Numbered from the stretch's first letter, positions 2,242 through 58,113 are shown. The stretch: 64,000 nt of DNA from Macrostomum hystrix (GCA_950097015.1 CATNEN010000004.1:274918-338917); one strand, 5' to 3'. Notes: a model not told the origin generated them from the sequence alone. Numbers and translations are program-made.

Positions 2242-2690
2242 GCAGACTGGCTGCGTACCCTGTTGAGGTCGAAGGGTGACACCTGTCCCTCAGAGCCGTA
2301 GCCAGAGGTACCTGATCACGCACAGGTGCGCGAGACGCTGCGGACTGGCCGCATACCCTGTTAAGGTCAAAGGGTGACACCTTTCCCTCAGAGCCGTAGC
2401 CAGAGGCACCTGATCACGCACAGGTGCACGAAAACTGCGGACTGGCCGCATACCCTGTTAAGGTCAAAGGGTGACACCTTTCCCTCAGAGCCGTAGCCAG
2501 AGGTACCTGATCACGCACAGGTGCGCGAGACGCTGCGGACTGGCCGCATACCCTGTCAAGGTCAAAGGGTAACACCTCTCCCTCAGAGCCGTAGCCAGAG
2601 GTACCTGATCACGCACAGGTGCACGAAAGCTGCGGACTCGCCGCATACCCTGTTAAGGTCAAAGGGTGACACCTTTCCCTCCAGCCAGGG
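2242..2690 (-). repeat. About 4.6 copies of a 97-98-bp monomer in the LINE A 5' UTR
   Basis: Units begin at about 2242, 2340, 2437, 2535 and 2632 (GCGGACTGGCCGCATACCCTGTTAAGGTCAAAGGG...). The same monomer occurs at 29983-30330. Confidence 0.95.
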
Positions 2691-2741
2691 CTAGAGGTAC
2701 CCAGTTTGGCCAGAGGCCCTGGATGGGTCATCCAGCGCTGT

Positions 2742-2969
2742 TGCCCATTCTGTCCGGCTGCCCTAGGGTCAGCCTTGAACACTCGCGGGACGTGTACCCA
2801 TGGGTCAGCTGACGGGACAGCGTGGAGGGATCCCTGCACCCGGAGGTACAGGGCTCCTTCCTGCCAGGCCTGCTCAAAAAACGACTGCAGGTGTGAGGCA
2901 TCGCAGACCTTAGCCCGTAGGCCTGGTCTGACTCATACCACACAGGCATTGTGTCCCGCCGGTGCGAGC
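2742..2969 (-). ncRNA. HDV/CPEB3-like self-cleaving ribozyme at the 5' end of LINE A (predicted)
   Basis: P1 GCUCGC(2969-2964)/GCGAGU(2786-2781); P2 UGACCCAU/AUGGGCA; P3 GGG/CCC; L3 UACACGU; P1.1 AC/GU; P4 GGCUG..CAGCC; J4/2 CAGA with putative catalytic C at 2752; J1/2 about 155 nt. Confidence 0.75.
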
Positions 2970-3790
2970 CTCCCACTCTCCTACTCTCCCACTCTCTCTA
3001 CTCTCCCACTCTCCTACTCTCCTACTCTCTGTACTCTCCCACTCTCTCTACTCTGCCACTCTCCTACTCTCCTACTCTCTCTACTCTCCCACTCTCTCTA
3101 CTCTCCCACTCTCTCTACTCTCCCACTCTCTCTACTCTCCCACTCTCTCTACTCTCCCACTCTCTCTACTCTCCCACTCTCCTACTCCCCTACTCTCTCT
3201 ACTCTCCCACTCTCTCTACTCTCCCACTCTCACTACTCTCCCACTCTTTCTACTCTCCCACTCTCTCTACTCTCCCACTCTCACTACTCTCCCACTCTTT
3301 CTACTCTCCCACTCTCCTACTCCCCTACTCTCTCTACTCTCCCACTCTCTCTACTCTCCCACTCTCTCTACTCTCCCACTCTCTCTACTCTCCCACTCTC
3401 CTACTCCCCTACTCTCTCTACTCTCCCACTCTCTCTACTCTCCCACTCTCCTACTCCCCTACTCTCTCTACTCTCCCACTCTCTCTACTCTCCCACTCTC
3501 TCTACTCTCCCACTCTCTCTACTCTCCCACTCTCTCTACTCTCCCACTCTCTCTACTCTCCCACTCTCTCTACTCTCCCACTCTCTCTACTCTCCCACTC
3601 TCTCTACTCTCCCACTCTCTCTACTCTCCCACTCTCTCTACTCTCCCACTCTCTCTACTCTCCCACTCTCTCTACTCTCCCACTCTCTCTACTCTCCCAC
3701 TCTCCTACTCTCCCCATTCTACCCACACCCACTCTCCCCCTTCCCACTCTCTTACTTCCCCACACTACCAAACTCCCACACTCCCACTCT
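2970..3790. repeat. 17-bp pyrimidine-rich minisatellite (CTCTCTACTCTCCCACT)n
   Basis: Direct reading of the tandem units. The overlapping S/L/P/T-rich ORFs are repeat translations. Confidence 0.95.
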
Positions 3791-20653: not shown

Positions 20654-22450
20654 GTCTGTGCCCTTACACCTGCCCCCACCTGAGCCTTTCGATACACAGA
20701 AAGAGCCACACAATCTCGCGGCGCGGTGGGCAGAATGGGCCAGCCGGTTCAAGTGCTTTGTGACAGCCAGCGGCATTTCAAACACGTAACAGCAACGCGA
20801 AATTCTGCTATGTCGGCGGTAAACAGCTTTACGAAGCCTACACAGAGCTGACCACACCAGGCGAGTCACTCGACGATCTCCTAAAGGCCTTCAAAGGGCA
20901 CTTCAGCAGCAGGCACAACCCCGTGTTCGTGCGGTACGAGTTCCGGTTCTGCACTCAACAGCAGGGCGAGTCTATCAACGCTTGGGTGCAGCGGCTGTAC
21001 AAGGCAGCAGAGGGCTGCGATTTCCAGACCCAGCGCGACCCCATCATCAGGGACCAGATCGTTGCCGGCTGCCAATCAGACCAGCTGCGACGCAGGCTGC
21101 TGCAGACACCGAACATCGGCCTTCAGGACGCCCTGCAGCAGGCCAGAGCCTTCGAATCGGCGGACCTCCAGTCAGCGGCTATCGAAGCCCGAAAGTCCGA
21201 CTCTGTGAATGCTTTTCGGCGAATCGAGAGGCCAGCGAGATCGGAGCAGCCCAGAAACAGCAAATGCATCCGCTGCGGCGAGCCGGGCCACAGAACTTGC
21301 GAGGTCAGCATCCACCTACGCAAAGAAGCCGTGCCTGTCTGCCACCCACCCAGCCGAGTCCCGGTGCACCTGCCGGAGGCAGCGCAGCGCGAGCTAGACG
21401 AACAGCTCGCGGCCGGCATCATCGAGCGAGTGAAGGGACCGTCCGACTGGGTGGCCCGCATGGTGGTGGTCCCGAAGTCGCGCAGCCAGGCCAAGTGCGC
21501 ATCACCAAGGACCTGCGGGATGTTAACAAGTTCGTGGTGCCCGACATTCGAGGAGGTCACAGACGAAATGGCGGGCGCGCGCTACTTCTCGGAGCTCGAC
21601 ATCAACAAGGCCTTCCATCAGATCCGCGTCCGGGAGGAATCGCGCCACTTGCTGACGTTCTCCACGCCAAAGGGCCTCATGCGACTGACGCGCCTGTGCA
21701 TGGGATTCACGTCAGCGTCGGAGATCCTGCAGAGGGTCATGACCACCGTGCTCGGCGGTCTGTCCGGGGTCCGCTGGGTGCACGATGACATCATCTACAC
21801 CAGAAACATGAAGGACGACAACCAGCAACTGGCGGCAACTCTGCAGCGGCTGGAGTCCTACAACGTCACCCTCAACCCGGCGAAGTGCAGATTCGCGGTC
21901 AGGGAGGCGACTTTTCTCGCCATGCGCCTCTCTGAGAAGGACATCCAGCCAACTGAGGACAAGGTGAGCGCGGTCCAGTCGTTTAGGGCACCGAAGAACG
22001 CGTCCGAGGTGAGATCATTCCTAGGCCTCGTTGCCTTTGTCAGCCGCTTTATCCCAGCACTCGCAGACATTGCCAAGCCTCTCAGAAACCTGACTAGAAG
22101 GGAGGCCGCCTGGACCTGGGGAGCGGCGGAAGACGCTGCCTTCAACGCCGTCAAGAGCTCCATCGCTGCCAGCAACACGTTAGCGTTCTTCGACAAGCGG
22201 AAGCCGACAGAAGTGATCGTGGACGCCAGCCCGACCGGCCTCGGGGCGATCCTCAGCCAGCAACAGCCAGACGGCAGCCTGAGACCAATCGCCTACGCCA
22301 GCCGCGCCCTGACGGCCGTAGAGGCGCGCTACTCGCAGACCGAGTGGGAGGCTCTCGCGGTTAAATTCGGCTGCCTCCGCTTCCGCCACTACCTCAGCGG
22401 CTCACCCGGCTTCCGAGTCGTCACCGATCACAAGCCGCTGGTGCACCTGT
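20652..22450 (+). pseudogene. Degraded gag-RT-RNase H polyprotein lacking protease and integrase
   Basis: Gag starts MSVPLHLPPPEPF with an early stop and frameshift. The half zinc knuckle CIRCGEPGH runs straight into RT (MVVVPK, ELDINKAFHQI, VHDDII), then RNase H (VDASPTGLGAIL, AYASRAL, TDHKPL), then truncation. Confidence 0.9.
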
Positions 22451-22536
22451 TTTACTTTATTCAAATTTCGTCTTTGTGGCCACCCTGCTCGTGTTAATCT
22501 CCCATTTTAATTTCATTTAAAGGATCTAAGGATCTT

Positions 22537-23825: not shown

Positions 23826-24478
23826 TCTGGTCACCCTAATATTCATATATAATTACATATTAACCGAAAATTACTGTGCCGATTCAGAGGGACAGATATG
23901 CGGACACTCAGAACTATGGACAATCTTGTCTGTCCACGCCCGTCTCGCAGGCCCAGGAACATCCTACCATCACGGGCCGTGGCTACTTTACTAGGCACTG
24001 TTTCCTCCGGGCGCGACCTTGCGAGTGAATTTTGCCTTTTTGCCTGTACGGCAACGAAGATGCTGAACAGTTTGTTTGTCCATGTATGCTCTTTTTTTCA
24101 ACAGAGACTGGCGATCAACGAGATTTGTCAGCCTCACAATCCTACGGTTTGTCCAGTTCCTTGGGGCAACAAAGACGACGAGCCACCGTTCGTCCCCACA
24201 GAAGACATCGGTGGACAAGCGGCCCCGTGCCATCGCCAATACACCTTTTTCCGTTCAATTTCAACAAAACTCGCATACAATTTCGGCAAGCCAAAAATCA
24301 AATTCGTCAGTTTATATTTAGCTTGACAAATCAACATTCAAATTCAGCAAACGCACATTCAGATTTAACTTGACTTAGCGGCAGGGAGCCTCCATGACGG
24401 ACGCAGCGAGGAGGCGGCTGATGCCGCCCATATCGCTAACCCCTGGCAGCCAGACAGCCTCCAGCGAGGCGGTGCCGC

Positions 24479-27400
24479 TCAGGGTGGTCCGTCGGTCGAT
24501 TCCGCCGCGCGATCTTCCTCGCCATAGGCTGGGAAGAAATCAGCTCGGCCGGTATCCCGGAGGAAGTGGGCGAGCTGTGGGATGTTCTCGGGCGAGCAGG
24601 CTTCGGCGAGAGTCGGTGCCGGCCCGAGATGTTTTAGCCTGGCCCGGGTGAAGGCCGGGCAGTGGCAGATGAAATGCTCTGCATTTTCGCGTCCGGAGCA
24701 GCAGAAGGGACACGTTTCCTCAGGCACGTGGCCTTGAAGGTAGCGGTGTCTGGTGAAGCAGCCATGTCCCGAAAGAGCCATAGTGACTGCTCTTAGGTCT
24801 CTGCGGTTAAGCCTGAGTAAGGCCTTACGCAGGTTACTAGAGGGGGTTGGCACCGCAGCCCTGGACTGGCGACAGTTCAGGGTGCTGGACCACCTCCTCC
24901 GGTGCTGGGTCTCCATCCAGCAGTTGATGCTGGAGTTGACAACTGAGATGGGGATCGGGGACTCCGGGCCCGGGCCCATCAGGGAGCTGGCTGCTCCAGC
25001 CTTAGCAAGCTGGTCCGCCATCTCATTCCCTGTGAACCCGGCATGCCCAGGGATCCACAGCAGCTCCACCTTGTTAGACTGCGCCAACCCGTTTAACTGG
25101 GTGTTGCAGTCCAAGGTGGTTCTGGAGCGAGAGGTGCAGCGGCTGAGGGCCTTGAGGGCTGCTTGACTGTCGGAGTGAAAAAAGATCCTCCGACCAGCCA
25201 GCTGCCTCTGGCGCATCTCAGCCGCACAGAAGCTGATGGCGAGCACTTCGTTTTGGAAAACGCTAGAGCTCTTGCCACAGTATTGGGAGTGGGTCCAGAG
25301 GACCTCACCACCCGAGGCGACGCACACTCCGAATCCCGATTTACCGTTCATCAGAGAGCCGTCAGTGTAACAGTGGACTGCCGGGTCATCCCAGCAGTCC
25401 TTAACCTCATTACGAGGGGAGATGCTGACTTTGTACCTGTGGCTCCGGAGTAAAGTGGCCGGGGCCCCGTCCGAAAGGATGGTGAGCCCTCCGCACTCGC
25501 CCAGAGTTTTCAGGCAGAGGTCAGAGTGAGGCAGAAGGGAGCGCTTCGAGAAGGCTCGCGAATTCTGGAAGGAGACACCCGCATCAAGAAGACGACGGGT
25601 GGACTTTGCTGCTTCCCCCTTGACGAAAATGTCAATGGGTGTAGCGTTGAGGAAAGCATTCATGCCTTCGAAGGGAGTGGAGGGTGGGGCGCCCAGCGTC
25701 ATACGACAGGCTCTGCCCTGCACACTATAAAGCGCCTCCAGGTTTTTCTGGATGCCCATGGCGCTGGCCCAGATGAGGCCAGCGTAAGCGACGGACGGTC
25801 TAATGATCGCCGTGTAAATCCACCAAAGGTTCTTGGGGGTTAGCCCCCAGGTGGTGCCCACGGCACGCCTGACTTGCGCCAGTATGGCCAGGGCCCTCTT
25901 GGCCTTTGTGGTGATGTGTGGGGTCCAGTTAAGCCTATGGTCTAGCACGAGACCAAGGCACCGGACCTGCTTTTCCATGGCAATATTCTTGCCATAGAGA
26001 GTCAGAGGCTTAATGGTCCAGAGCAGTTTGCTGGATAAACATAACCGCAACGGTCTTGGACTCAGAGAGTCGGAGCCCGCATTGGTCCTGCCCAGCGCAC
26101 CGCCCTGTTGATAAAGCCCTGGATGAGGTCTCTGGTGGTTTCCGCCGAGGGGCCCGCGCAGATGGCGGTCACATCGTCGGCATATCCCACCTTCAGGACT
26201 GGGTCTGGACGAGTGCTTTTCAGCAGCTCATCCATGACGAGATTCCACAGCAGTGGGGTGAGGACGCCGCCTTGGGGCCCTCCTTTTAGGACAGGTGCCG
26301 AGAGCAGCCTTCCTTCGAGGTGGGCCACCACGTGGCGATGCCGGATCATGTACATGACCCAGCGAACGAGGTGGGGGTGAGTGGCCCTGGAGACCAGGGC
26401 CTCCTCAAAAGCTTCGAAAACAACGTTATCGAAGGCCCCCTCAATGTCTAGGAAGACAGCCAGGGCAAAACCGCTGCCCAGCACTGCCTTCTCGAGAGTC
26501 TCCACGATGCAGTGGAGGGCGCTCTCCGTGGACCGGCCCGCCCGAAAGGCGTGCTGGTTTGGGGAGAGCGGGGCCCGCCCTAGCTCTACAGTAAGAAGGC
26601 GCCAAAGCACCAGTCTTTCCATGAGCTTGAGGCAGGTGGAAGTCAAACTTATCGGGCGATAGGATTTGACCGAGCGATAGTCGCCTTTGGCGGGCTTCGG
26701 GATGAAGACGACCCGGGCTTCGTGCCACAGCGCTGGTACATAGCCCAGCACGATGCAGGCCCGTAGAAGTCTGCAGAGGAGATGGAGGAAGCGGCCATTT
26801 TTGACCGCTTCATGCAAAAAGGCCGGATAAATACCATCTGGCCCAGGTGCTTTGAAAGGGTTGAATGACTTTGCCGCGCGAACGATGCGGTCATTCGTGA
26901 CGAGTGACTGAGCCAGGCCCTGACCTCCACGTGAGTGGTCGTCTGGGCCAAAGTGCGCCGGTACACTCGGGAAGAAATGCCCTAGCATAAGCTCGAGCGT
27001 TTCCTCCGGGCGCTCCGTGATCGAGCCGTCTGGCTTTTTGATCGATGAGAGCTTGGAGAAGCGGTCGTTGGTGAGCGCCTTTACCACGCGGGCCGTGGGC
27101 CGCGAGCCCTCAAGCCCTTCGCAGTATTGTCGCCACTTGTCCGCTTTTGCCCTTTTGACCCGGCCCTTAAACTCATGGATGGCGCGAGTATAGGCCTCTT
27201 TGTCATCAGGGTCGTGCGAGATTTTCAACCTCCTCTGGAGAGCCTTAGCTCGGCGTCTCAGGACTCCGAGCTCGGGGTTCCACCAGGGGGCCGATTTTTT
27301 GCCTTTGTAGGCTTTGAGCGGGCAAGCCATTTCGTAGGCCTCTGTGATGGCGCCGCCCAGCAGGGCAGCCACTCCATCTAGGTCCTGCGTGGTTGCCATG

Positions 27401-28186
27401 GCCATGGAGGGGTCGGAATCCCGAAGGCCCTCATGCAGCTTTTGGCTGAACACGGGCCAGTCGGTGTTTCTGACATTACGCCTCCAGATAGGCTTTTGCT
27501 TCTTATCGGGGGTACCGATGTTGAAGCGAATGAAGCGGTGGTCCGAGAGCGAGCTTTCGGTCTCCCACACCTCCCACCCCAGCACCTTTGGGAGGATGCC
27601 GGGTGAGGCCAGGGTGACGTCAAGCACCTCAGCCCACCGCCCATTGTCGAACGTGGGCGTGTTGCCCACATTGCAGAAGTTAAGAGGCGTGCCGCTAACG
27701 AAGGCCAGGAGCTCTTCGCCGCGGTCATTGATTTTTGAGCTACCCCAGTGGGTGTGATGCGAGTTTGCATCTCCCGCGAGGAGCAGCTCAAAATTTCGTG
27801 CCCTGGCGAAATCACAGAGGGCGACGAGGGTATCGCTGACCACGGGGGCGTCGCCTGCCAGGTAGGCGGATGCCACGAGGGTCAACTTGTTGGGCACAAT
27901 GTGTGCAGATTGGATGACGCAGATGTCCCCGTTAGAGAGATCGGGTCTCATCCACGCATTTAAGGCTTTTGCAGCATAGATCAGTGATCTAGGGCGGACA
28001 GAGTCTGCCATGCAGAAGCAGTCATAGCCAGCAGGAATGTTACTTGGCTTGTTTTTTGATAACCAGGGCTCCTGCACAAGTACAAGGCCCGGCATCGTGC
28101 GCTCTGTCGTGCGCATCAGATTGACTGATGCTGCCACGCAGTGCTGGGTGTTAACTTGCAAGACATGATATTCCGGGGATCATCAT
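24479..28186 (-). CDS. LINE B ORF2: endonuclease, reverse transcriptase, RNase H, C-terminal Cys/His motif (three +1 frameshifts)
   Basis: [86 protein letters not shown]. Single extra bases near 28163, 26085 and 26035. Confidence 0.93.
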
Positions 28187-28198
28187 GCAGGCAGAGGT

Positions 28199-29748
28199 CT
28201 ACTTGGAGGGGGACTCAGCCAGAAGGCGGTCCTCCTCCTCCGGGTCGATGTCGGTAGCCATGGGCTCCTCCGTGCCCCGGCCCCGAGCCAGAGGCGGGAA
28301 CTCGACGGGGTCAGCCGCCCAGTCCCCACCCCCGGCCCTGAGCCCAGGCCCAGAGTCACCCTCAACCGGTGCCGACACCGCACCCTGGGCCGTGGGAGGG
28401 GCGCTCGAAGGGCCCTGCATCGATGGAGCTGGGCACCTTAGAGGCCTCCCCCGTAGCCCTTGGTTGCGGCGCCTGCCCCGGTGGGCCAGCCGCGCATCTC
28501 AGCGCGCAGCTGGGCCATCCTGGCGGTTCGCACCACCTCGGAGGCCCGCTGGAGAAGGCCCCGGCGCTTTGTGATGCGCGCGGGGCGACGCTCAGAGCTG
28601 CCAGCGATGGCACGCTCTGGCCTTTTTTGGCGAGACGACTGGGCCCTGCCCCCAGTCCCAGCCTCGGGGTCCGAGGACCCTTCAGTGGCCGGTACGGTGG
28701 TGGGCCCGGTCTGACCTCGAGATTTATCTGCCTCGAAGGCGAAGATTTTGGTCTTCCACAGACCGATGCAGATGTTGGCGCCATCTGGGTAACGGCGTGT
28801 CCATTGCTCGGACAGGCCCAGAATGGCGGTAAATCCGGTGCCATCGGGGCGCAGGATCGTGCGGTGCACGATCAGGCCCGCTGTCGGCAGCTCCCGGTTC
28901 ATCGCGATGAGGCCCATGCGGAGGTCCTCAGCGCTGGTGACGACACTTTTCGCCGGGACGAAAATGCGGTGTCGCTTGGTCTTTGGTGGCTCGTTCTCCC
29001 GGAGGAAGTCGAGGCCAGCCGCCCAGCTCTGCGTGGGCAGCAACTCAAGGAGCCGCCGCCCTGATTCCGCGTCGCCGGGCCAGACGACGAAGCACGATTC
29101 CCTGGTAGCGCTTGCGCCGACCGCCAGGGGCTCGCCCTTCAGTTGGAGTTGCCACAGCATAGCATCTATGTTGCGGCAAATGTTGCTGAGCTGTTCGCTG
29201 CTCAGCCTTTTTCCGTCTCTGCCGGTGATGACAACGGCAGGTTGCCTACGTGCGATGGCGGCGTAGGTGGCATGTGTTCCCGGGCCCTGTCCGGTGGCGA
29301 CCCCACCCTCGGGATCAGCGTCGGCGGTGGGCACAGGGCCCTCTGCCTCCGCTTCTCCTTCAGGCCGAGCCGCCGTCCGGATGGGCGCCGGGACCTCCTT
29401 GGCCCGCGACCCTGGCCTCGGGGCGTCGAGGGCTCCGCCCCGTGCAGGAGCCTGGGCAGGAGGCGCAAGGCCCCCCGCCCCAGCCCCCGCCCTAGGCAGA
29501 GCCCCTTCGGCCCCTCTGGTCTGGGCCCGGTCCTCGGTCGATGGAGCCGGCTTGCCGTGGGCCATTAAGCGCCTACGACGCTTCGCCGCTCCAGAGGTTG
29601 AGGAGCGCTTAGCGCCCCGGTCGTCGCGCGAGTTGGGCAGCGCGGCATTTGTGGCGGTCGCGGGGCCAGCTAGCCCGGGCGCCGCAGCGTGTATGGCCTC
29701 GGGCACCATGGTGTCCTCGGCCGGAGCAGTTGGTAGGCTGGAAGCCAT
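28199..29748 (-). CDS. LINE B ORF1 (gag-like), frameshifted near 28450-28550
   Basis: First ATG at 29748. The core is homologous to LINE A ORF1. The C-terminus EEPMATDIDPEEEDRLLAESP (ORF 28199-28420) matches the LINE A end EEPMELGQNTGEDEESLLNNSP. Confidence 0.82.
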
Positions 29749-29982
29749 TTGAAAGCTGCAATGAGGAGAGGGGCTTCCTGTAGACACAGGCAGGAATAAC
29801 CCGCTCAGCCGCGATCCCAAAGCTGAGCGGGGGCAGCCAAAAAAGACAAGTTACAACCCGGGGTGGGATGCCAGGACCACCGGGAGGAACCGTAGGAGGC
29901 CAGACTACTCCCTGGTCAAGCGTCCATCAGCACGGTCAACACTGGGACATTAGAGGGCGCTATTTGGCCAGCGCCGAGGCCT

Positions 29983-30330
29983 GCGGACTGGCCGCATACC
30001 CTGTTAAGGTCAAAGGGTGACACCTTTCCCTCAGAGCCGAAGCCAGAGGTACCTGATCACGCACAGGTGCACGAACGCTGCGGACTGGCCGCATACCCTG
30101 TTAAGGTCAAAGGGTGACGCCTTTCCCTCAGAGCCGTAGCCAGAGGTACCTGATCACGCACAGGTGCACGAACGCTGCGGACTGGCCGCATACCCTGTTA
30201 AGGTCAAAGGGTGACACCTTTTCCTCAGAGCCGTAGCCAGAGGTACCTGAACACGCACAGGTGCACGAACGCTGCGGACTGGCCGCATACCCTGTTAAGG
30301 TCAAAGGGTGACACCTTTCCCTCCAACCGG
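29983..30330 (-). repeat. About 3.6 copies of the 97-bp monomer in the LINE B 5' UTR
   Basis: Units begin at 29983, 30080, 30177 and 30274; same monomer as at 2242-2690. Confidence 0.95.
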
Positions 30331-30382
30331 GGCTAGAGGTACCCAGTTAGGCCGGAGGCCCTGGATGGGTCGTCCAGCGCTG

Positions 30383-30612
30383 TTGCCCATTCTGTCCGGC
30401 TGCCCTAGGGTCAGCCTTGAACACTCGCGGGACGTGTACCCATGGGTCAGCTGACGGGACAACGTGGAGAGGATTCCTTCACCCGGAGGCACAGGTCTCC
30501 TTTCTGCCAAACCTGCTCAAAAAACGACTGCAGGTGTGAGGCATCGCAGACCTTAGCCCGTAGGCCTGGTCTGACTCATACCACACAGGCATTGTGTCCC
30601 GCCGGTGCGAGC
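30383..30612 (-). ncRNA. HDV/CPEB3-like self-cleaving ribozyme at the 5' end of LINE B (predicted)
   Basis: The core is identical to the copy at 2742-2807. G1 (30612) lies immediately next to the TSD. Putative catalytic C at 30393. Confidence 0.78.
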
Positions 30613-30879
30613 TTCAGATTTAACAAGCAACATTACAATTTCGGCAACTGGCATTCAATTTCATACCGTCGCACAAGCTATTGTACTGTCTATGGTGAAA
30701 AGGGGGTTGAAGCGTGTAGAAATCTCATTCGATTTCGGCATTTTGCATTCAATTTCAACATGTATATTTTAGGTAGAACACATAGCACATCAAACAGAAC
30801 GGAGCGGAAAGAACACACAACGAAAACGAACACATCTTTTGTTTGACCAAATGTAATTGAAATGTACGCGACAGTCAAA

Positions 30880-33031: not shown

Positions 33032-36000
33032 CTATTCGATAGAGGACCCGTCTGCAGTCACAGATGCATCGCTGTTGGGTTCAATATTTTCTTTTGCGCT
33101 TGTTGACTCGCCATCCGTACTCGTCTCAAGATCATCACTTGATGTCTCATCATCATTTGATTGAGATGACTCGTCAAATATTCGTGCTTGAGGCATGTAC
33201 TGCGCATTAGTAATTGAATGATAAACATTACCAAGAGTTTCTTTGATTTCATCGATTTCTCTTTTAGTATTTTCGCAAGTGCTTGCGACATCTGCCAGTG
33301 CCTTGCTTACATGATTAATCCATTCGTTATTAGTTGTCAGAAACTGTCCAGCTAGTCTGGCATGACCAGCCAGAATTTCTTGGGTCTGGACTTGAAGAAG
33401 TGCCTTAATTGATTCTGTCTGTCTCACGTCGTCCGGATTCTGCAGTATGCTGCTTTCGCGCACCCAGGACTCTCTGACCTGCTCAGGCTGGACTGCGGTC
33501 GGATCACTCCCTGTTCTCCACTTGGGCCGCTCGCCATGGTCACCGTTGGAGGCCACAGTCGACGCCTCTGCCTGCTCCTCCGCTGAGTCCAAGAGGCTGA
33601 GTATGGGCGGACGCCACAGTTGATGGCGATGACGCCGCATGGTCTTCGCATGCAGCCTGGCAAACTCTTCTGGTAGTTCTGCTGGCTTGCTTTCGCTTGT
33701 GTTCCTCTGGCTGAGCTGTGTGAGGAGAAGGAAGAGAAAATTCTTGGACAATACGAGCTTAGTTGTGCAAAACGTCAAGAATTAAAAAACCACTGTTCTG
33801 ACACGACCGCCTTACCTGATAGTGTTTGTATCGCTGAGAATAAACCAAAATGGCATTGAAGGCTCCAAAAATGGTAAACGGTGGCGCAAACCACGTCTTG
33901 TTGGCGAACTCCTGCAGCAGTTGGTACCTGCTGCGCCTCCAAATGGCCAGCGGCCTGGTTGCCATGCGAGTCACCGTCACGTTGAAAAGCGCGATGAGAA
34001 GATTCAGCATTACCACCCCGATTACGAGGAAGAAGATGAATAAAACAACATTCAGGAAGAAGTTCTGCCCACCGGAATTGGCGCAGTCGGTGGCGCTAGC
34101 GGTATGAGAACTGCAGGTCTCATACTCAACCTTCTCAAAAAAACCGGCGGTCAGATGCAATGGAATCGTGAAGATCCTACCGAAATTTCTTACCTCAACG
34201 TACTGCGAGTCGTCACTACGTATGGAAGTGCCCGGAAAAACTATGTTGAATACGAACACGCCAAACATTACATACATTACTAGCATTATAGCAAGGAACG
34301 GCAGAAGGTTGTGCCAGATGAGATCATGAAACATTGAAATCAGCGGGCCTATACTTCTAAAGTATCGTAGAAGACAAAAGGCCCTGAAGCACCACAAAAC
34401 AAAGGAAACTGTCAGTGTTATCTGGCATCCGTAGACGATCTCCTCTTTTTCGCCTATTTCACTGCCTTCCGCAATGATGCGCTTCCAGATCAGCCCAACT
34501 AACATGGCTACAATGGCGAGAATATCGAAGACGTTAAAAACATCACGCAGGTAGTTTATTTTCAGCATCACCATATCAAACACCTCTTGGAGCAAGAGAG
34601 AGATCAAATACCACCAGAAAATGTACTCTGGAACATGCCAATGAAAGTTGCGCCTGATGTCGATTATCCAAGCGGCAAAGGACGTCAGGAAAAAAATGTA
34701 TGCCAACGAATGCACCACAATCTTAGCTTTTACATTCAGTGAAGTGAAGCATCTGTACCTCCGACCAGCTGCCGGGTTATCCGCTCCTGTGCTGGGCTCT
34801 GACTGGTGGCACTCGCAGTTAAACCGCTTTAGTTCCTCATCAACAAAGTCAACCAGTAAGCAGGTCGCGTAGACTTCCTCGCAGTCATACAGCTCAATCA
34901 TTTGCTTGATAGTGGCCTCCGATCTCTCCCACTGAGTTCGCTCCTTGGAACTGCAGCCTCCGATACATCTGAATCTTCCACTGTAGTTTAAACTCGGCTT
35001 GAAATAGCAGAATTTTCTCTCACTAGCCATAAAATCAAATATTATATTTCGCTCCTCGTCTCTTGCATCGGCGTACACGTGCTCAAAAGCGTTAATCAGC
35101 ACACATTTCACCCTGTACTCCAGTGACCTTAGATGCGTGTCTTTTGCCTCGTAGCTGGTCTTCAAAGCTTGGATTTCGATTAGCACTCTAAGGCAAACTG
35201 GGATTAAGTCACTCTGGCGGGTGACTACAAAGTCAAAAAGTACCTGGACTCTGCGTAGATGTAGGACAATTTCAATGAAGTCAGGTTTTTGCTTTCCCCT
35301 GAATGCCTCTTCAAGACTCCCTATATTTGAGAGACCGTCGGCTTGAAGAAGGAGAGCAAATACTTCAGCCTCAACTGTAGGCGTTACTTTGAACCCTAGA
35401 GTCATGAGAGCGCGGAAGTGGTCGATCGAGTCCAGCCTGATGGCCTCCAGCAGCAGTGACACCTCTGGCCGCGTCCATTGATTATAGTCAAGATTGGCGA
35501 GATGGAAGTCTGCATTTTCGCGCTTTTCTAACTGCTGCCTGGGGCTAGAAAAAGAGTCAAGCATTTGAGCAGCCTCTTGCTGAGTTGGCAACTGAACTCC
35601 TCGCCTGCCGGGATCAACGACGCTTTCAAACACATCGGGCTGGAAACTCTCCATAATTCTATCCAATGTCCTCTGGTGCCCAGCCCTACAGGCGAAGTCG
35701 TATGAGTTAAGCCCGTCATTTGTTTCATCTGCCATGGAAAACTTCTCCTCCAGCAAATAGCGTATATTCTGCTCATGGCCTCCCTCACAAGTAAAGTGCA
35801 TAACGGTGCCACCTTGCTTCGGTCCGAAATCAACGGGTGAAAGGAGAAGATCGTACCATGAGCGATCGGAAACTGAGCACATCAACTCTTTAATTTCAAT
35901 GTACGGATACCGACTGAAAAAATAGTTAATTGCATGAACTCTAGATGTGTTATAGAGCAACTTTTGCACCATGCTTTTCTCTCCGAAATGAAGGAAAATG

Positions 36001-39000
36001 TCTATAACCTGCCGCAGATTTATCATCGGCAACTCAGCAGCCTGGAAAAAGTTCTGATCGGCGCTATTTTCAGTGCAAGGATCAACGCCAGTCTTTATGA
36101 GCTGGAGCACCTCTCTAACAATCTCCTTCGCTGTGCAGTACAGCTGTTCGCTATCATTCTTGTCCCACAAAAACAGAGCATGCAGCAGTGTATTTCCAAT
36201 CCGATCGCGTAGAATCCGCCTCTGCTCATCGCTCACCTCCTGCATGAGTCGAACATTCTTGCTGCCGAAAGCGAAGAAGGTCGAGTTTCTGAACTGGAGG
36301 TCTCGCTTTGCTGCTAGATATTTGAAGTTGTTGTCCTGAATCTCTTGCCTGATCACATCTGTCACATCGAAGCCGTATTTAGAGTTCCTGGCACTGAAAT
36401 GAAGGCTTGAACGATGCTGATGATCAGTCTGTGAGAGGCCAGACAGCAGGCGTTCGTTATTGGAGTCCATTTTTAGTAGCTTCAGGAGCGACTGTATGCA
36501 ACGACTGTTTTGATGCTGCAGAGCGAAGTGCAGTGGGGTTAATCCCGTCCAAGTCTCCACTCAGGAGGCTTTGTATCATACTTTTTAAAACATTATTTTC
36601 TGAACCATTCCTTTGCAGCCTCTTAAACAACCACTTAAGGTTGCGGCCGCCTGTGACTTTGTTCATTGCAACGTAGTGCAGGACTGAGCGTTTTCGTTTG
36701 CAGGTCTCAAGCAACGCGTCGAAGTTGGGATTCTCGCCAAGCAGAGTCGCAAGCATGCTGGAGTCTCGCCTGTTCATGGCTCCGTAATGCAAGACAGTGC
36801 GACCCAGCGAGTCCTTGTCTGTGCCGCTGAAATTTAAGCCTCCGCTGCTCTCCATTTTTTGCTTGCCTGATGCCGCCTGGTACTTTGCTGCCACGAGGCT
36901 TATTGACTTTCCCGTATTAGAAGCGCGCATGTCTATCGGAGGACCTTCCTCATTGCGCACCTGTGTTAGGATCTCTACAAAAAACTCACGCTTGGCACAA
37001 CGTTGCATGGCGGACTTTCCTGATTTAGTCTCCTTTAAGAAAAACTTTTTTTTCAGTGTTCTGACGGCTTGCTCGACAACACTCTGCTTCTGAAATGCTG
37101 AGACTTGACTGGCCAGTTGAATGCGGTCTTCTTCGCTCAGGAAGTCCTCTCTGTTATTCTTCAGGAGCTGCAACATGGCACTGGAAGCCTGACCGTTGCC
37201 CGCTAGTTCTAAAGTGAATTCACTTAAAGCGGACCTCTTCGAACCATCGGGTATTTTCTGATACATTAACTCAAAAAATTCATGTACGCCTGAATTCCTA
37301 GCGGCCATTTTGAGCACTGAACTGTTAACATCCATGTTCCGCCTTTCGATCAAATCTGGCATGATTCCCACTGCTCTGCTGTTGGCAGCAACGTAGTGCA
37401 TAGGTGTCATGCCCTCTTGGTCAGCTCCGTTCCAATTCAGTTCACTGTGGCACAAATGCGACAAAGCCACAGAGTTCTGATGCATGGCGGCGATGTGCAA
37501 AGCAGTTCTGCCTTTTTTGTCCCTCTGCAAGAGAATTTCGCTAGGCTGCTCCCCTTGAGGCCAAAGCTTCTTCAGGGACTTCTTAATGAATTGATGGTCC
37601 TGGTGCTGGAAGGCGTAGTGCAGCGGTGTGCAACCAAGTTCGTCCTGTTTACCGAATGCCTCTGTGTGCTCTCGAAGAAGAGTTTCAACAGTTGATTGGC
37701 GAAGCCGATTGCTGCAGAAGAGGTGAACCGGAGTCATGCCTCTGACATCCTTGACGCAGAGATTTTCCTTCAGCATTCGCATAAATTCGTCGGGCATATT
37801 CTGCCGGCAGTACATGTTCTTTGCTAATTCATGTACGGGTGTGGATTCGAAACAATTCTTTTTTCCAAGAATCGAAACCCAATCGCTTTCTTTTCCATTC
37901 TGAGCAGCAGAAGTCTAAGGTTGTCTTTAAAGTCTCCTTCCTGTGGTTTCTTGCCATCAGATGAATCGCAGTAGTACCCTGAGAGTCTCCTGCAAATAAA
38001 AGCTCTGAAGATTTTGGGTCATTTGTATTAAGATGCCTGACAAAATGTTCTGCTGCCAAAAAACCAGTTCTATTGGCGCACAGATGGTGCATAACCGTGC
38101 GGCCAAAATTGTCGGCTTCGGCTGTCAGCTCAGCCATTTTTCCGTTATCGATGTAGTGTCTCACGAATTCAAGCGTGTGCGGTCCGCACGCAGCAAAGTG
38201 CAGCGGTGTTTTTCCCTCCCTGTCCTTCATCAGCGTTTTAATTCCACTAGCGCTCAAGGCTTTCAACGCTTTCTCCAATGTTTGCCATTTCATAGCGAAG
38301 TGCAGTGGAGTTATGCCATCTGCGTCCATTTCACTGAGAATTCGACTCCCACAGCATTCGATCAGGGAGGTAAGAGTGTCCCCAAACTTGTTCTTGGCTG
38401 CCAAATGAGCTGGCGTTCGTCCTTTGACGTCTTTCCTCTCGAGTAGACTCTTGTCTTGAAAGGATCTCAGGAACGACAAGTGACTTTGATGCTTGGCGGC
38501 CAGATGAATGGGAGTTCTATTTTTAGCATCACGAGCAGACCAGACCTCAGGTGTCACCTTGCTCATGCCCATCTCAGGGATCCATGTGTGCTGGAACTGC
38601 GCCGCATAGTGAAATGGTGTTCTGCTCTGAAAATCTTTTGCTGAAAAAGCTTTGGCACAATCTTGGCTATGATGAACAATAAGCCACCAGAAAAGGCTTT
38701 TCGTTTCTATATCACGGCTCGCATTTGCGCTATTGTCAGTTGCCTTATTGGGCAGTGGAAGTGCGGAAGAGGTGAAACTTCGGTTGATCGCTGCGTAATG
38801 TAAAGGCGTTCGGCCATCTGCATCAGGCTGACGGAATTCAGAGAAAAAAAGTTTCTTCTGTGCTGTCTCTGCTGTCTGTTGTCGAATAAATTTAACAATT
38901 TTCTCTGGATGTGAGCTCATAGCAAGGTAGTGTGCGAGAGAGCGGCCTTTAAGATCTTTTATGTTCAGGTGGGTAGATATCAGCCTCATATAGCCTTTGC

Positions 39001-40552
39001 ATGTCTGTCTCTCAGCCATGAGATGAAGCGGCATCACTCCGTGATGGTCTACGTCCAGAAATCTCTCTTCCGGTAGCTTTTCCTTCAGACGCGGTAGTAG
39101 TTTTGTGCAGGCTGGATTGCCTGCTGCATAGTGAACGACAGTTTTGCCATGAGAGTCTGCAATGCTAAAGTGATTAACATCAAGAACATCTATCAACTGT
39201 TTCATAGATCTAAACTGTTCCTCATAGTTTGGAAGCTTGTTTTGCCAGGTGAGTACTGCCAGGTGCAGCGGCGTTAGCTTGTCATTGTCCTCCTGTAACA
39301 TTTTGGACACGAGTTCCGCATTGTTGTTGATCCAACTTAGCATTTCCCAGCGGCTGTTCGGGTTCAAAGCGCAGCAATGAGCCGCAGTCCTGCCGCTCTG
39401 GTCCCTTCTGTTCCACCACTCGTCCACAAGCAGGCGATCGTATTGGTACAGCCACTCCAGCGTTTTGAGACAGCCGAATCGGCAGGCACAGTGCAGCGGT
39501 GTCTCAGCCCGCTTGTTGCTCCTCCATGCTTCTATTTGTTGCCTTAGAAAGTTTCGCAGTGGTTGATTTTCTAAATCTAGCCCGCTAGAGTTGCTGACTG
39601 CAAAGTGAAGCGGTGACCAATAATTATGGTCAATCTGATTAAGGGCTTTATCGTATTGTCTGTCGATTTGCGTCTTCCCAAACATCTTTACGACAGTCTG
39701 GGTGTCGCAGAACTGTAGGATTAACATAAAAGGCGTTTGCCCATGAGAGTCTTGCAACAATGGTTGCAGTGGTTTTTCCAGCAGTTCTTGCACCAGACGG
39801 CTGGGATCGCAGACTCGGCTGTCGGTCGCGTGGTGCAGCCCAGTTCTTCCGTGCCTGTCTTCCGTACCTAGCAGATCGATTGAATGAGTATGCTCAAGGA
39901 GGTATTTAATGATCCAGCTGTCTTGCCGCCTTTTGCTGGGGACAGATTGACCAGCTCTCGCTGACGTCGCCTGAGCCTTACCTGCACTGCTGAGACAGCA
40001 AGAGACGCCACAGCTGAGAGACCCTCTCACTGCGTAGTGAACCGGAGCCATGCCGTGCGCATCCTCTGTTTTCCAGCTTGAAATCTCTTTTCCTTCCAAA
40101 CGTTTCAGCAGTGGCTTTAGGGTGTGCGAATGCTTCAGTGTCACCGCAATGTGCAGCGGGGATCTGCCGCTGGCATCCAACTGAGCAAAATGGCTCACGT
40201 GGGCCAATCTGGAGTGGTTTGTTATCCGATCGATGGCCAACATACCGCCCGTCGTATCATCATTTTTTAGTCCCGAAATCCAGTGAATTAGAGTTCGACC
40301 GATGGAATCAATGGGAAATTTTGTAGTCGGTTCACTAAGGTATTCAAATAGTGTATTCATTTCGGGTCTTTTTATTTGAAAATATTCAACGTCATGCTTC
40401 TCGATTGCTGTGCGCACTTCTTCTGAAAATTCAAAAAGCTGCTTTGCCATATCCAAGTTGGGTGGCTTCTTGCCTCGAGAAGACTTCCTGCTGGCACCAC
40501 CAGCTGTGCCGCCTGCTCTGGTGCCCGCAGCCACGCCACCGCGGCCAGGCAT
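33032..40552 (-). CDS. Giant ankyrin-repeat TRP cation channel (about 2,470 aa if frameshifts are repaired; start uncertain, could extend to 40761/40885)
   Basis: Four ORFs join into one protein: +1 shift near 37900, +1 shift in a G run at 36544-36546, and a phase-0 intron CAG|GTAAGG...CACAG|CTC at 33716-33815. Roughly 30-35 G.TP/LH ankyrin motifs, six TM segments (about 33950-34725), NLLIALFN, a TRP box WRRSRYQLLQEF..APPF and a C-terminal coiled coil. Confidence 0.85.
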
Positions 40553-41022
40553 GACTCTAGACGACAGGGAAACAAAGCAGGAACGGGATTGTTCATGTAG
40601 CTCTAAATCTGGGAGAGACAATTCCGCGGAAACCCCCCATTTTTGTGGACCAAATTTGGCTGACTGGGGTGAAAAAAAATTTAATTGCAGGAGGGCTGCG
40701 GGCAGTGGCACATCATTTATTGACACTTGACCCGCAGCCAGCAAGGAGGCAATTCTGCCCATTTCGCTGAATCCTGAGCACACACGCCCACAGATACTGT
40801 ACACAGGCACACACACTTTTTCATCGTCAGGCAGTGTACTCCTTACTGTGCCTTGGAGGTTGGCCCTCAAGGGCGTAAATTGCACGAAAAGCCCTCAAGC
40901 CTTCTCTTCGCGGCTGCGCCCCAAATAAATGTGGCCTCGTCGTGGAATCGAACTTCGGGAGGGTCGCTTTCACAAACCCTAATTTTCACAACGTTTAAAC
41001 CAGATCCTTTCATAAGCCCTAA

Positions 41023-46355: not shown

Positions 46356-47395
46356 AACTGGGGGATCATGGTAAACTGGGGGATAATTGTCAACTGGGGG
46401 ATCATTGTCAACTGGAGGATCATTGTCAACTGGTGGATAATTGTCAACTGGGGGATAATTGTTAACTGGGGAATCATCATCAAATGGGGGATTATGGTCA
46501 ACTGGGGATCATCATCTATTGGGAGTCATCATCAAATGGGGGATAATAGTCAACTGAGAGATAATTGTCGACTGGGGGATCATTGTCAACTGGGGGATCA
46601 TTGTCAACTTGGGGATCATTGTCAACTGGGAGATCATTGTCAACTGGGGATCATCATCTATTGGGAGTCATCATCAAATGGGGGATAATAGTCAACTGAG
46701 AGATAATTGTCAACTGGGGGATCATTGTCAACTGGGGGATCATTGTCAACTTGGGGATCATTGTCAACTGGGAGATCATTGTCAACTGGGGATCATTGTC
46801 AACTGGGGGATCATTGTCAACTGGGGGATCATTGTCAACTGGGAGATCATTGTCAACTGGGGGATCATTGTCAACTGGGGGATCATTGTCAACTGGGGGA
46901 TCATTGTCAACTGGGGGATCATTGTCAACTGGGGATCATTGTCAACTGCGTGATCATCATCAACTGGGGCATCATTGTCAACTGTGGGAACATTGTCAAC
47001 TGGGGATCATCATCAATGGGGAGTCATCATTAACTGAGGGATCATCATCGATTGGGGGATTATTGTCAACTGGGGGATCATTGTCAACTTGCGGATCATT
47101 GTCAACTTGGGGATCATTGTCATGGTCAACTGGGGATCATCATCAATTGGGAGTCATCATCAAATGGGGGATCATAGTCAACTGAGAGATAATTGTCGAC
47201 TGGGGGATCATTGTCAACTGGGAGATCATTGTCAACTTTGGGATCATTCTCAACTGGGGGATCATTGTCAACTGGGGGTTCATTGTCAACTGGGGGATCA
47301 TTGTCAACTGGGGGATCATTGTCAACTGGGGGATCATCATCAACTGGGAGAGCATCATCAACGGGGGGATCATTGTCAACTGGGGGTTCATTGTA
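46355..47395. repeat. 18-bp minisatellite (GGGGGATCATTGTCAACT)n; also at about 42345-43395, 49375-50410, 56985-58020, 59570-60630, 61985-63390
   Basis: Tandem units read directly; the GGSLST/GDHCQL/GIIVNW ORF repeats are its three frames. Confidence 0.95.
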
Positions 47396-47846: not shown

Positions 47847-50505
47847 TTTATATACTAAAATTCAAAACTATATTTCTATCTATCTATCTATATATATATA
47901 CGAAAAATTGATTTTCTCCCGAACGGCTCAACCGATTTTCACCATTTCTTCACCAAAAGATGCCAAATATGGGGACAATTATACACGTATTTTTATTAAG
48001 CTTAACTTTATTGCTAAGGGGATTAAATATTCGAAAAACATGATTTTTCAAAGGTCAAACCATCTTGGCCTATTGAGAATTTCACTGACAGCCACTGAGT
48101 TAGAATTGCATCGTCGAATTGCGCAACAACCCCTAGCTGATTGAATTTGAAGCCTGCACTCTGGAGACAAATTAGAAATAAATGTACACAACCAACCGCG
48201 AGACTGAGTGTACTCTATTTTCTCACTTTGTTGTACAAAGCCAGAACTTTGAGAATTCATTTTATAAGGCTGATTTCTGCACCCACTAACCAACAGTCGG
48301 AATAGCCGATGTGTAGGCACGAGGAATAAGTTAGGCTAGGCTAGGGTTCGATTCTGCACTGCGTCAAATCATTTAGACTAATTTTCAGCCAGTAGTGATT
48401 GAAGACTATTTTAATTTATTTTTTTCATTTCGTAAATAAAATATTATAAACCATAGAAAATCTGAGTTTGAATCATTGCAAAAATAGAGTTTGAATCATG
48501 GCTAAACCAGAGTCTGAATCATGGCTAAACCAGAGTCTGAATTATGGCTAAACCATAATATGAATCATTGCTAAACCAGAGTCTGAATCATGTCTAAACC
48601 AGCGTTTGAATCATGGCTAAACCATAGTATGAATCATGGCTAAACCAGAGTCTGAATCATGGCTAAACCAGCGTCTGAATCATGGCTAACCCAGCGTTTG
48701 AATCATGGCTAAACCAGAGTTTGAATCATGGCTAAACCAGATCTTGAATCATGGCTAAACCAGAGCTTGAATCATGGCTAAACAAGAGTTTGAATCATGG
48801 CTAAACCAGAGTTTGAATCATGGCTAAACCAGAGTTTGAATCATGGCTAAACTATGGCTTGAATCATAGCCAGCCAGAGTTCAAGCTAAACCAGAGCTTG
48901 AATCATGGCTAAACCGGAGTTTGAATCATGGCTAAACCGGAGTTTGAATCATTGCTAAACCAGAGTTTGAATCATGGCTGAACCAAAGTCTGAATCATGG
49001 CTAAACCAGAGTTTGAATCATGGCTAAACCAGAGCTTGAATCATGGCTAAACCGGAGTCTGAATCATGGCTAAACCAGAGCTTGAATCATGGCTAAACAA
49101 GAGTTTGAATCATGGCTAAACTAGAGTTTGAATCATGGCTAAACCAGCGTCTGAATGATGGCTAAACCAGAGTTTGAATCATGGCTAAACCAGAGTCTGA
49201 ACCATACATAGCTAAACCAGCGTCTGAATCATGGCTGAACCAGCGTTTGAATCATTGCTAAACCATAGCTTGAATCATAGCCAGCCAGAGTTCAAGCTAA
49301 ACCAGAGCTTCAATCATGGCTAAACCAGAGCTTGAATCATGGCTAAACAAGAGTTAGAATCATGGCTAAACCAGAACTGGGGGATCATGGTAAACTGGGG
49401 GATAATTGTCAACTGGGGGATCATTGTCAACTGGAGGATCATTGTCAACTGGTGGATAATTGTCAACTGGGGGATAATTGTTAACTGGGGAATCATCATC
49501 AAATGGGGGATTATGGTCAACTGGGGATCATCATCTATTGGGAGTCATCATCAAATGGGGGATAATAGTCAACTGAGAGATAATTGTCGACTGGGGGATC
49601 ATTGTCAACTGGGGGATCATTGTCAACTTGGGGATCATTGTCAACTGGGAGATCATTGTCAACTGGGGATCATCATCTATTGGGAGTCATCATCAAATGG
49701 GGGATAATAGTCAACTGAGAGATAATTGTCAACTGGGGGATCATTGTCAACTGGGGGATCATTGTCAACTTGGGGATCATTGTCAACTGGGAGATCATTG
49801 TCAACTGGGGATCATTGTCAACTGGGGGATCATTGTCAACTGGGGGATCATTGTCAACTGGGAGATCATTGTCAACTGGGGGATCATTGTCAACTGGGGG
49901 ATCATTGTCAACTGGGGGATCATTGTCAACTGGGGGATCATTGTCAACTGGGGATCATTGTCAACTGCGTGATCATCATCAACTGGGGCATCATTGTCAA
50001 CTGTGGGAACATTGTCAACTGGGGATCATCATCAATGGGGAGTCATCATTAACTGAGGGATCATCATCGATTGGGGGATTATTGTCAACTGGGGGATCAT
50101 TGTCAACTTGCGGATCATTGTCAACTTGGGGATCATTGTCATGGTCAACTGGGGATCATCATCAATTGGGAGTCATCATCAAATGGGGGATCATAGTCAA
50201 CTGAGAGATAATTGTCGACTGGGGGATCATTGTCAACTGGGAGATCATTGTCAACTTTGGGATCATTCTCAACTGGGGGATCATTGTCAACTGGGGGTTC
50301 ATTGTCAACTGGGGGATCATTGTCAACTGGGGGATCATTGTCAACTGGGGGATCATCATCAACTGGGAGAGCATCATCAACGGGGGGATCATTGTCAACT
50401 GGGGGTTCATTGTAGCTTTAAAAAGCTGTAAATTCAGCTGCTAAAAAGTATATACTAGACGAATTAAAAGTATTTCTGCTCCCCGAAGGGGGGCAAAACT
50501 TGCTA
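47847..50505 (+). mobile_element. Long Helitron, copy 3 (variant head)
   Basis: TTTATATACTAAAATTC head; followed by short Helitrons at 50506-50843 and 50866-51192. Confidence 0.82.
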
Positions 50506-56900: not shown

Positions 56901-58113
56901 CAAGCTAAACCAGAGCTTCAATCATGGCTAAACCAGAGCTTGAATCATGGCTAAACAAGAGTTAGAATCATGGCTAAACCAGAACTGGGGGATCATGGTA
57001 AACTGGGGGATAATTGTCAACTGGGGGATCATTGTCAACTGGAGGATCATTGTCAACTGGTGGATAATTGTCAACTGGGGGATAATTGTTAACTGGGGAA
57101 TCATCATCAAATGGGGGATTATGGTCAACTGGGGATCATCATCTATTGGGAGTCATCATCAAATGGGGGATAATAGTCAACTGAGAGATAATTGTCGACT
57201 GGGGGATCATTGTCAACTGGGGGATCATTGTCAACTTGGGGATCATTGTCAACTGGGAGATCATTGTCAACTGGGGATCATCATCTATTGGGAGTCATCA
57301 TCAAATGGGGGATAATAGTCAACTGAGAGATAATTGTCAACTGGGGGATCATTGTCAACTGGGGGATCATTGTCAACTTGGGGATCATTGTCAACTGGGA
57401 GATCATTGTCAACTGGGGATCATTGTCAACTGGGGGATCATTGTCAACTGGGGGATCATTGTCAACTGGGAGATCATTGTCAACTGGGGGATCATTGTCA
57501 ACTGGGGGATCATTGTCAACTGGGGGATCATTGTCAACTGGGGGATCATTGTCAACTGGGGATCATTGTCAACTGCGTGATCATCATCAACTGGGGCATC
57601 ATTGTCAACTGTGGGAACATTGTCAACTGGGGATCATCATCAATGGGGAGTCATCATTAACTGAGGGATCATCATCGATTGGGGGATTATTGTCAACTGG
57701 GGGATCATTGTCAACTTGCGGATCATTGTCAACTTGGGGATCATTGTCATGGTCAACTGGGGATCATCATCAATTGGGAGTCATCATCAAATGGGGGATC
57801 ATAGTCAACTGAGAGATAATTGTCGACTGGGGGATCATTGTCAACTGGGAGATCATTGTCAACTTTGGGATCATTCTCAACTGGGGGATCATTGTCAACT
57901 GGGGGTTCATTGTCAACTGGGGGATCATTGTCAACTGGGGGATCATTGTCAACTGGGGGATCATCATCAACTGGGAGAGCATCATCAACGGGGGGATCAT
58001 TGTCAACTGGGGGTTCATTGTAGCTTTAAAAAGCTGTAAATTCAGCTGCTAAAAAGTATATACTAGACGAATTAAAAGTATTTCTGCTCCCCGAAGGGGG
58101 GCAAAACTTGCTA
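53061..58113 (+). mobile_element. Long Helitron, copy 4 (about 3-kb 23-bp array)
   Basis: Same internal sequence; followed by a short Helitron at 58114-58451. Confidence 0.82.

Follow-up and report, generated by a model that had tools for sequence, protein, structure and literature searches.

A single 5' module, composed of a leader of about 290 nt that is predicted to contain a ribozyme and a tandem array of 97/98-nt monomers, is common to at least four LINE families (E1 to E4) in the genome of Macrostomum hystrix. The leader varies independently of the coding bodies downstream of it, and recurrent exchange of the module between families, rather than a single swap, is very likely. As an account of the whole data set, a predicted ribozyme leader and monomer array that have been recurrently exchanged among LINE families provide the best explanation, and one that we consider likely. 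We analysed a stretch of 64,000 nucleotides (hereafter the window; C4:274918-338917) and searched a genome of 220 Mb in 42 contigs. The window holds two of these LINEs, E1 and E2, both on the minus strand. A first-pass annotation, in which they were elements A and B, had proposed that a ribozyme-plus-monomer cassette passed from one family to another. That proposal stands insofar as module and coding bodies have had separate histories; the implied one-off swap between two families does not, because at least four families are involved.

The E1 copy begins with a G (nt 1, hereafter G1) at position 2969. Its unique leader (2682-2969, element nt 1-288), which we aligned to that of E2 and to those of 43 other copies, is followed by the monomer array (2241-2681), for which TRF reported 97/98-nt units in 4.5 copies and for which we also listed the junctions. 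The post-array 5' UTR (2108-2240) diverges along with the body. ORF1 (620-2107) encodes 495 amino acids with no Pfam domain, and the start of ORF2 (1-626), which encodes an APE endonuclease, runs out of the window; in the genome, the open frame of this ORF2 extends over 1287 aa (at C4:274920-275543). ORF2 of E1 is in a different frame from ORF1 and overlaps its end. The 3' end lies beyond the window, and no target site duplication (TSD) is visible for E1. A 17-bp minisatellite at 2970-3714 is the insertion site of this copy.

The E2 copy begins with G1 at 30612. It consists of a unique leader (30324-30612, with the candidate ribozyme at 30387-30612), a monomer array (29982-30323; 97-nt units, 3.5 copies according to TRF, with junctions likewise listed), a post-array stretch between array and ORF1 (29749-29981), ORF1 (28438-29748), ORF2 (24479-28161) and a 3' UTR (24368-24478) with a short (CAAGT)n-like tail, the element ending at 24368; all of these lie on the minus strand. 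ORF1 is shortened in this copy, matching residues 1-432 of the intact protein, which has 515 aa. ORF2 encodes an APE endonuclease, a reverse transcriptase (RT) and an RNase H (Pfam Exo_endo_phos_2, RVT_1 and RNase_H), with a break near 26050-26062 in the window copy; the intact ORF2, found in copy L050, has 1238 aa. The 10-bp TSD that the first-pass annotation had assigned to E2 is present on both sides: TAAATCTGAA, read on the minus strand, occupies 30613-30622 and adjoins G1 directly, and its partner TAAATCTGAA occupies 24358-24367. The elements are APE-type non-LTR retrotransposons with an RNase H and form a related group. A search with ORF1 matched Macrostomum lignano proteins at 47-70% identity.

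Comparison of the two window copies showed a near-identical 5' module on diverged bodies. The 288-nt leaders differ at 14 positions (94.8% identity in a global alignment), with nt 1-102 and approximately 157-245 identical, and the first monomers are about 95% identical. Beyond the array, DNA identity is 52-54%, versus 49-52% for the shuffled baseline; at the protein level, identity is 54% for the endonucleases (193 aa aligned) and 40% for ORF1 (274 aa aligned). These values agree with the first-pass annotation, which had described endonucleases about half identical, similarly diverged ORF1s, some 14 differences within the 5'-terminal ~290 bp, identity over the first ~100 nt and the predicted ribozyme core, common 97-bp monomers (4.6 and 3.6 copies, compared with 4.5 and 3.5 by TRF) and an abrupt loss of similarity after the last monomer.

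Across the genome, the first 32 nt of the module occurred 155 times with three or fewer mismatches, compared with 0 occurrences of a reversed control pattern, so the shared terminus is not due to chance. There were approximately 210 candidate leader sites, and the E1 leader was found in 18 copies at 99-100% identity. Sequence-level analyses covered 45 distinct copies (L001-L050); further copies were included by coordinates and identities only. In 44 of these 45, the element starts with the same G, preceded by unrelated flanking sequence. Of 15 E2 copies checked, nearly all have TSDs of about 8-14 bp that adjoin G1 with no extra base, together with a (CAAGT)n-like tail; a TSD search at L031 found none. 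Because 44 out of 45 copies start at G1 and the TSDs abut it, the unit that retrotransposes truly begins with the module. The first-pass annotation had considered that the module might occur mainly as a free SINE; instead, an ORF1 lies 0.5-3 kb downstream in 79 out of 100 listed 5' ends. The remaining 21 had no ORF1 match, and at least seven of these are internally deleted LINE copies, as judged by inspection or by their coordinates. Four module 5' ends on contig C14 (778852, 795184, 832214 and 875625) lie within 100 kb with no ORF1 match downstream; this cluster may represent a module fragment in a segmental duplication. Assembly artefacts were ruled out, since every type of junction was present at more than one locus, in differing flanking sequence.

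We grouped copies by the sequence that follows the array, that is, by body, but the groups were named after the leaders had been viewed. E1 comprises a young burst of copies that are 99-100% identical as well as older copies at 94-97%, and E2 comprises subfamilies a to d. In the sequence set, E3 is represented by L022, L028 and L031 and E4 by L030. The proteins of these families are deeply diverged. ORF1 identity is 40% between E1 and E2, 34-38% between E1 and E3, 30-33% between E2 and E3, approximately 40% between E4 and either E1 or E2, and approximately 52% between E4 and E3. The endonuclease of E1 is 62-64% identical to that of E4, 60% to that of E3 and 54-56% to that of E2 (54% for the window copies), and the RT of E2 is 68% identical to those of E3 and E4. 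The longest ORF2 open frames reach 1287 aa in E1, 1238 or 1813 aa in E2, 1273 aa in E3 and 1245 aa in E4. Each of the four thus includes intact copies, and the families appear to be simultaneously active.

Among young subfamilies, E2c is the most numerous, with approximately 34 near-identical intact copies; it is 94% identical to E2a in ORF1 and 98% in RT. Judged on the first 32 nt only, the 5' variant of E2c (G21, A30) resembles the E4/E1-old type more than it resembles E2a. ORF1 and ORF2 lie in the same frame with a single stop between them in the E2a copy L050:988-6426. In about 30 E2c copies this stop is absent, giving one fused ORF with an open frame of 1813 aa (574+1+1238). Subfamily E2d (for example, C7:7330469-7334668 and C39:20924989-20929188) is only 87% identical to E2a in ORF1 but 98-99% identical in RT, so the coding bodies look mosaic too. 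We also observed a fifth related family, E5, with copies near C7:12483511-12487667 and C38:33393630-33395740; its RT and ORF1 are 81% and 50% identical, respectively, to those of E2, and its endonuclease is 58% identical to that of E1. No module 5' end with two or fewer mismatches was listed upstream of two E5 copies (C7:12486786 and C1:11981446), and E5 may carry a different 5' end, without the module.

Module divergence does not track body divergence, as the first-pass annotation had expected of an exchanged cassette. Leaders from different families are 92.8-100% identical (median, 95.2%), whereas body identity between families (51.6-57.8%) equals the random baseline. Within families, leaders diverge at a median of 0.35 times the body rate; on this ratio, vertical descent predicts at least 16% leader divergence between families, which is more than was seen. 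At 23 informative leader sites, L021, which has an E1 body, matches L022, which has an E3 body, at every position, and L028 (E3) likewise matches L030 (E4) throughout; L031, a third copy with an E3 body, bears an E2-like leader, so that three leader variants occur in E3. In the leader tree, E3 required three changes and never formed one clade in any of the 200 bootstrap trees (200/200). An AU test that left out two identical partner rows rejected E3 as a single clade (p-AU 0.0096); a single clade was not rejected for E1 (p 0.18) or E2 (p 0.31), and it is therefore E3, together with the identical variants, that carries the statistical argument for conflict.

These combinations are not confined to single copies. 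Taking the copies placed by coordinates, a leader 100% identical to that of L030 heads three E4 and three E3 copies, and E1 copies have leaders that match it at 99% identity. Because the combinations recur at several loci, the chimeras are amplified lineages rather than single rearranged loci, and the presence of the same leader variants in several families points to repeated exchange. The young E1 leader itself has a mosaic-like appearance, resembling E2 over its first 100 nt and old E1 copies thereafter, a contrast that over 23 informative sites is too weak to claim.

We then considered where the exchanged part ends. The array holds between 0.9 and 7.5 monomers of 97/98 nt, depending on the copy, and is thus unstable, and arrays are approximately 95-98% identical between families. 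The last (3'-most) monomer is family-specific in E1 and in E3, in each case under different leader variants, which places most breakpoints inside the array. In E3 copies of the L022 type, by contrast, the array joins the body at a different monomer phase, through the 4-nt microhomology TGCG, and a second locus seems to have the same junction. This junction reflects an independent, non-homologous event, such as would result from a template jump.

Downstream of the array, the first ~100 nt retain 52-66% identity with conserved blocks in all four families; the post-array 5' UTR of E1 is 52% identical to that of E2 and 63-66% identical to that of E3. The families thus descend from an ancestor with this 5' UTR layout, of which only the portion up to the array end has been kept uniform. 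This weak homology does not fit the likeness to mammalian L1 5' UTR replacement drawn in the first-pass annotation, since the sequence recruited in mammals is unrelated. The conserved post-array blocks (2108-2240 in E1 and 29749-29981 in E2) include a CCGGGGAGTAGTCCGG-like hairpin, which may be a functional 5' UTR element. By analogy with other monomer-bearing LINEs, the array itself is probably an internal promoter or enhancer.

The leader fits the nested double pseudoknot of HDV-like ribozymes, with predicted P1, P1.1, P2, P3 and P4 in canonical order. In E1, the candidate ribozyme spans 2744-2969 on the minus strand (element nt 1-226). P1 would pair nt 1-6 with nt 184-189 (2964-2969 with 2781-2786), including a G1-U189 wobble, and P2 would pair nt 166-170 with nt 222-226 (2800-2804 with 2744-2748). 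P3 would pair nt 171-173 with nt 181-183 around a 7-nt L3 (P3/L3, 2787-2799), and P1.1 would consist of A175-U191 and C176-G190. P4 would occupy nt 192-217 (approximately 2753-2778), and J4/2 would begin with the putative catalytic C218 (2752), four nucleotides ahead of P2. A strongly structured insert of about 160 nt lies between P1 and P2. The predicted cleavage falls 5' of G1, the base with which 44 of the 45 copies begin. A descriptor of this fold, composed after the sequence had been viewed and thus post hoc, was scanned over both strands of the window (128 kb) and returned only the module copies, with G1 at 2969 and 30612, whereas 30 shuffles returned 0 matches. The fold z-score of the leader was -3.9, and only one of the 23 informative sites lies inside the core (nt 160-232).

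Searches against Rfam gave no match at the gathering score for the whole window, no HDV-type match at permissive thresholds for the E1 leader and no HDV-type match at E<=10 for the E2 core alone; the Rfam models may fail on account of the ~160 nt inserted between P1 and P2. RNAalifold, run on 27 distinct leader variants, found no pair changed on both sides, in a set of copies that are at least 93% identical and so offer too little variation. The old copy L029 has an uncompensated U3-to-C change in P1. The ribozyme of the first-pass annotation hence remains plausible through its fit to an HDV-like descriptor but, with no Rfam match, is a structural prediction. On this modelling, we consider a real self-cleaving HDV-like ribozyme that cuts before G1 to be fairly likely.

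These observations suggest a mechanism. Transcripts starting at or upstream of the element would be trimmed to G1 by the ribozyme, which would explain both the exact G1 start of full-length copies and the abutting TSDs. The module would act in cis, independently of the proteins encoded downstream, and would for that reason be interchangeable. It would have moved repeatedly among at least four coexisting families whose proteins are 30-68% identical. In most exchanges, the breakpoint would lie within the array, upstream of the family-specific last monomer, and the array would supply the homology by which RNAs or copies from different families could recombine or the reverse transcriptase could jump between templates; in at least one case, the 4-nt microhomology would have served instead. 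We give template switching in the array roughly an even chance of being the main exchange route. The fuller proposal is that one module circulates among at least four simultaneously active families by homology-guided template switching in the array, so that 5' ends evolve in concert and a "public" promoter/processing cassette sweeps through them; we advance it tentatively, at slightly less than even chances.

Several other histories could in principle place near-identical modules on such diverged bodies. In the first, descent is strictly vertical and purifying selection extreme: neither ribozyme nor promoter would tolerate change, and all families would have retained the original leader and monomers nearly intact during the divergence of their proteins. 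In its favour are the almost invariant ribozyme core and nt 1-100, the common ancestral layout of the post-array UTR and the vertical conservation attributed to trypanosomatid Pr77 (PMC4035085). Selection alone, however, cannot give variants that are common to several families yet differ inside one, and the identical leaders found in E3 and E4, and again in E1 and E3, contradict it. Leaders of the same family do differ from one another, at 0.35 times the body rate, and the arrays, which change fast in number, are nonetheless approximately 95-98% identical between families; we therefore regard strictly vertical inheritance as extremely improbable. It is also highly improbable that the module is an independent unit, whether a ribozyme-bearing SINE or a host promoter, that each family captured separately by read-through (5' transduction). 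Although the 21 of 100 listed 5' ends with no ORF1 downstream, including the cluster of four on C14, are what such a unit would produce, the other 79 do precede an ORF1 and at least seven of the 21 are deleted LINE copies. Moreover, the junctions share the same monomer phase with no foreign DNA between, TSDs enclose module and body together, and homology of the post-array region across families shows the layout to be older than the exchanges. No short module-plus-tail copy with its own TSD and no LINE body was present among the 45 copies.

Exchange could also have occurred at the DNA level, through ectopic gene conversion or unequal crossing-over seeded by the arrays, with new master copies spreading afterwards. 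Breakpoints within a long homologous repeat and wide variation in monomer number, as from unequal exchange, suit this route, and no RNA step is required by the data. Against it, the L022 junction, whose 4-nt microhomology lies at a non-homologous phase, resembles the product of end joining or of a template jump more than that of homologous conversion, and conversion would be expected to touch old dead copies, yet those keep old variants. The data are compatible with both routes; we tentatively favour exchange at the RNA level and consider the DNA-level route somewhat unlikely but a serious contender. A different alternative replaces the ribozyme: a fixed-start internal promoter would set the 5' end, and the HDV-like fold would be coincidental. 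I-type LINEs of insects do have internal initiator promoters, and the leader yielded neither an Rfam match nor covariation. The element start, GCTCGC, is however unlike an initiator, the junctions are free of the extra nucleotide often left by capped RNAs, and all HDV elements are in register with G1, with 0 matches in shuffles; we judge this promoter unlikely. Exchange of a module with a predicted ribozyme at its head thus remains our preferred reading.

The 5' UTRs of LINEs are usually viewed as lineage-specific and, in mammals, as serially replaced in an arms race with host repressors. In mouse and rat L1, promoters have been swapped among subfamilies whose proteins are very similar and which belong to a single lineage. 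In M. hystrix, by contrast, the partners share 30-52% identity in ORF1, 54-64% in the endonuclease and 68% in RT, and one module is present in at least four families. Mouse and rat L1 copies may also begin within monomers; in our set, 44 of 45 copies instead begin at G1 of a unique ribozyme-like leader upstream of the array. Monomer promoter swapping among mouse L1 subtypes is already established (PMC6454616); that paper, citing Saxton and Martin 1998, refers to mosaic mouse and rat lineages with swapped monomer promoters and to L1 elements that can bear a 'mismatching type of promoter'. The two systems are alike in having a tandem-monomer 5' UTR of variable copy number and a promoter type recombined onto another body, and in that the resulting chimeras amplify.

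The Pr77 hallmark of trypanosomatid L1Tc/ingi elements is a 77-nt internal promoter with an HDV-like ribozyme; it occurs across species and has been interpreted as conserved by vertical descent (PMC3383444, PMC4035085). Like our module, Pr77 is a 5'-terminal sequence common to diverged LINEs; it is also present on short derivatives and sets the RNA 5' end. The M. hystrix module differs in comprising approximately 290 nt plus monomers, in being near-identical within one genome and in having variants that cut across families, which argues for exchange. R2 and further non-LTR elements carry HDV-like ribozymes at their 5' ends (PMC3774820), and in R2/R1 hybrid SIDEs a ribozyme-bearing 5' end is joined to the 3' end of another LINE (PMC3414825). 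As in R2, the candidate cleavage site here is the first base of the element and the fold, in our case predicted, is a double pseudoknot. Unlike R2, which is site-specific in rDNA and co-transcribed with it, the M. hystrix elements are dispersed and have an APE endonuclease, monomers and a ~160-nt insert between P1 and P2; unlike the R2/R1 hybrids, which are non-autonomous deletion products, they are autonomous families. For primate L1, Khan, Smit and Boissinot reportedly described in 2006 a serial replacement of 5' UTRs in a single lineage, each new one unrelated to the last. There, as here, the 5' UTR evolves apart from the ORFs, whereas here one homologous module is present in several active families simultaneously. 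A literature search of incomplete coverage found neither a precedent for inter-family exchange of a 5' module in non-LTR elements nor a direct precedent for HDV-like ribozymes in flatworms. What appears to be new, in that we found no report of it, is repeated exchange among deeply diverged, co-active autonomous families, combined with features already known from L1, Pr77 and R2.

If this reading is true, LINE promoter and processing signals can act as a shared mobile cassette, and host silencing of this one sequence would strike several families at once. The array would then be both a promoter and the docking site that makes the cassette portable, and the exchangeability that tandem monomers confer on the 5' end may be part of the reason why they persist. 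These elements also lend themselves to a natural test of whether templates are switched in target-primed reverse transcription, and a transgenesis method exists in the genus, for M. lignano (PMC5730564).

The window contains several further features. Minisatellites are unusually dense in it, with units of 16, 18, 23 and 31 bp in up to 139 copies. Repeat statistics are identical for the intervals 46356-47394, 49375-50413 and 56983-58021, suggesting that a segment was recently triplicated locally. On the minus strand at 33032-40885, the products of long open frames have dozens of ankyrin repeats ahead of an ion-transport domain, suggesting a TRP-like giant channel gene. On the plus strand, an open frame at 20923-22497 encodes an RT of the LTR-retrotransposon type and an RNase H, and is unrelated to the LINEs described here.
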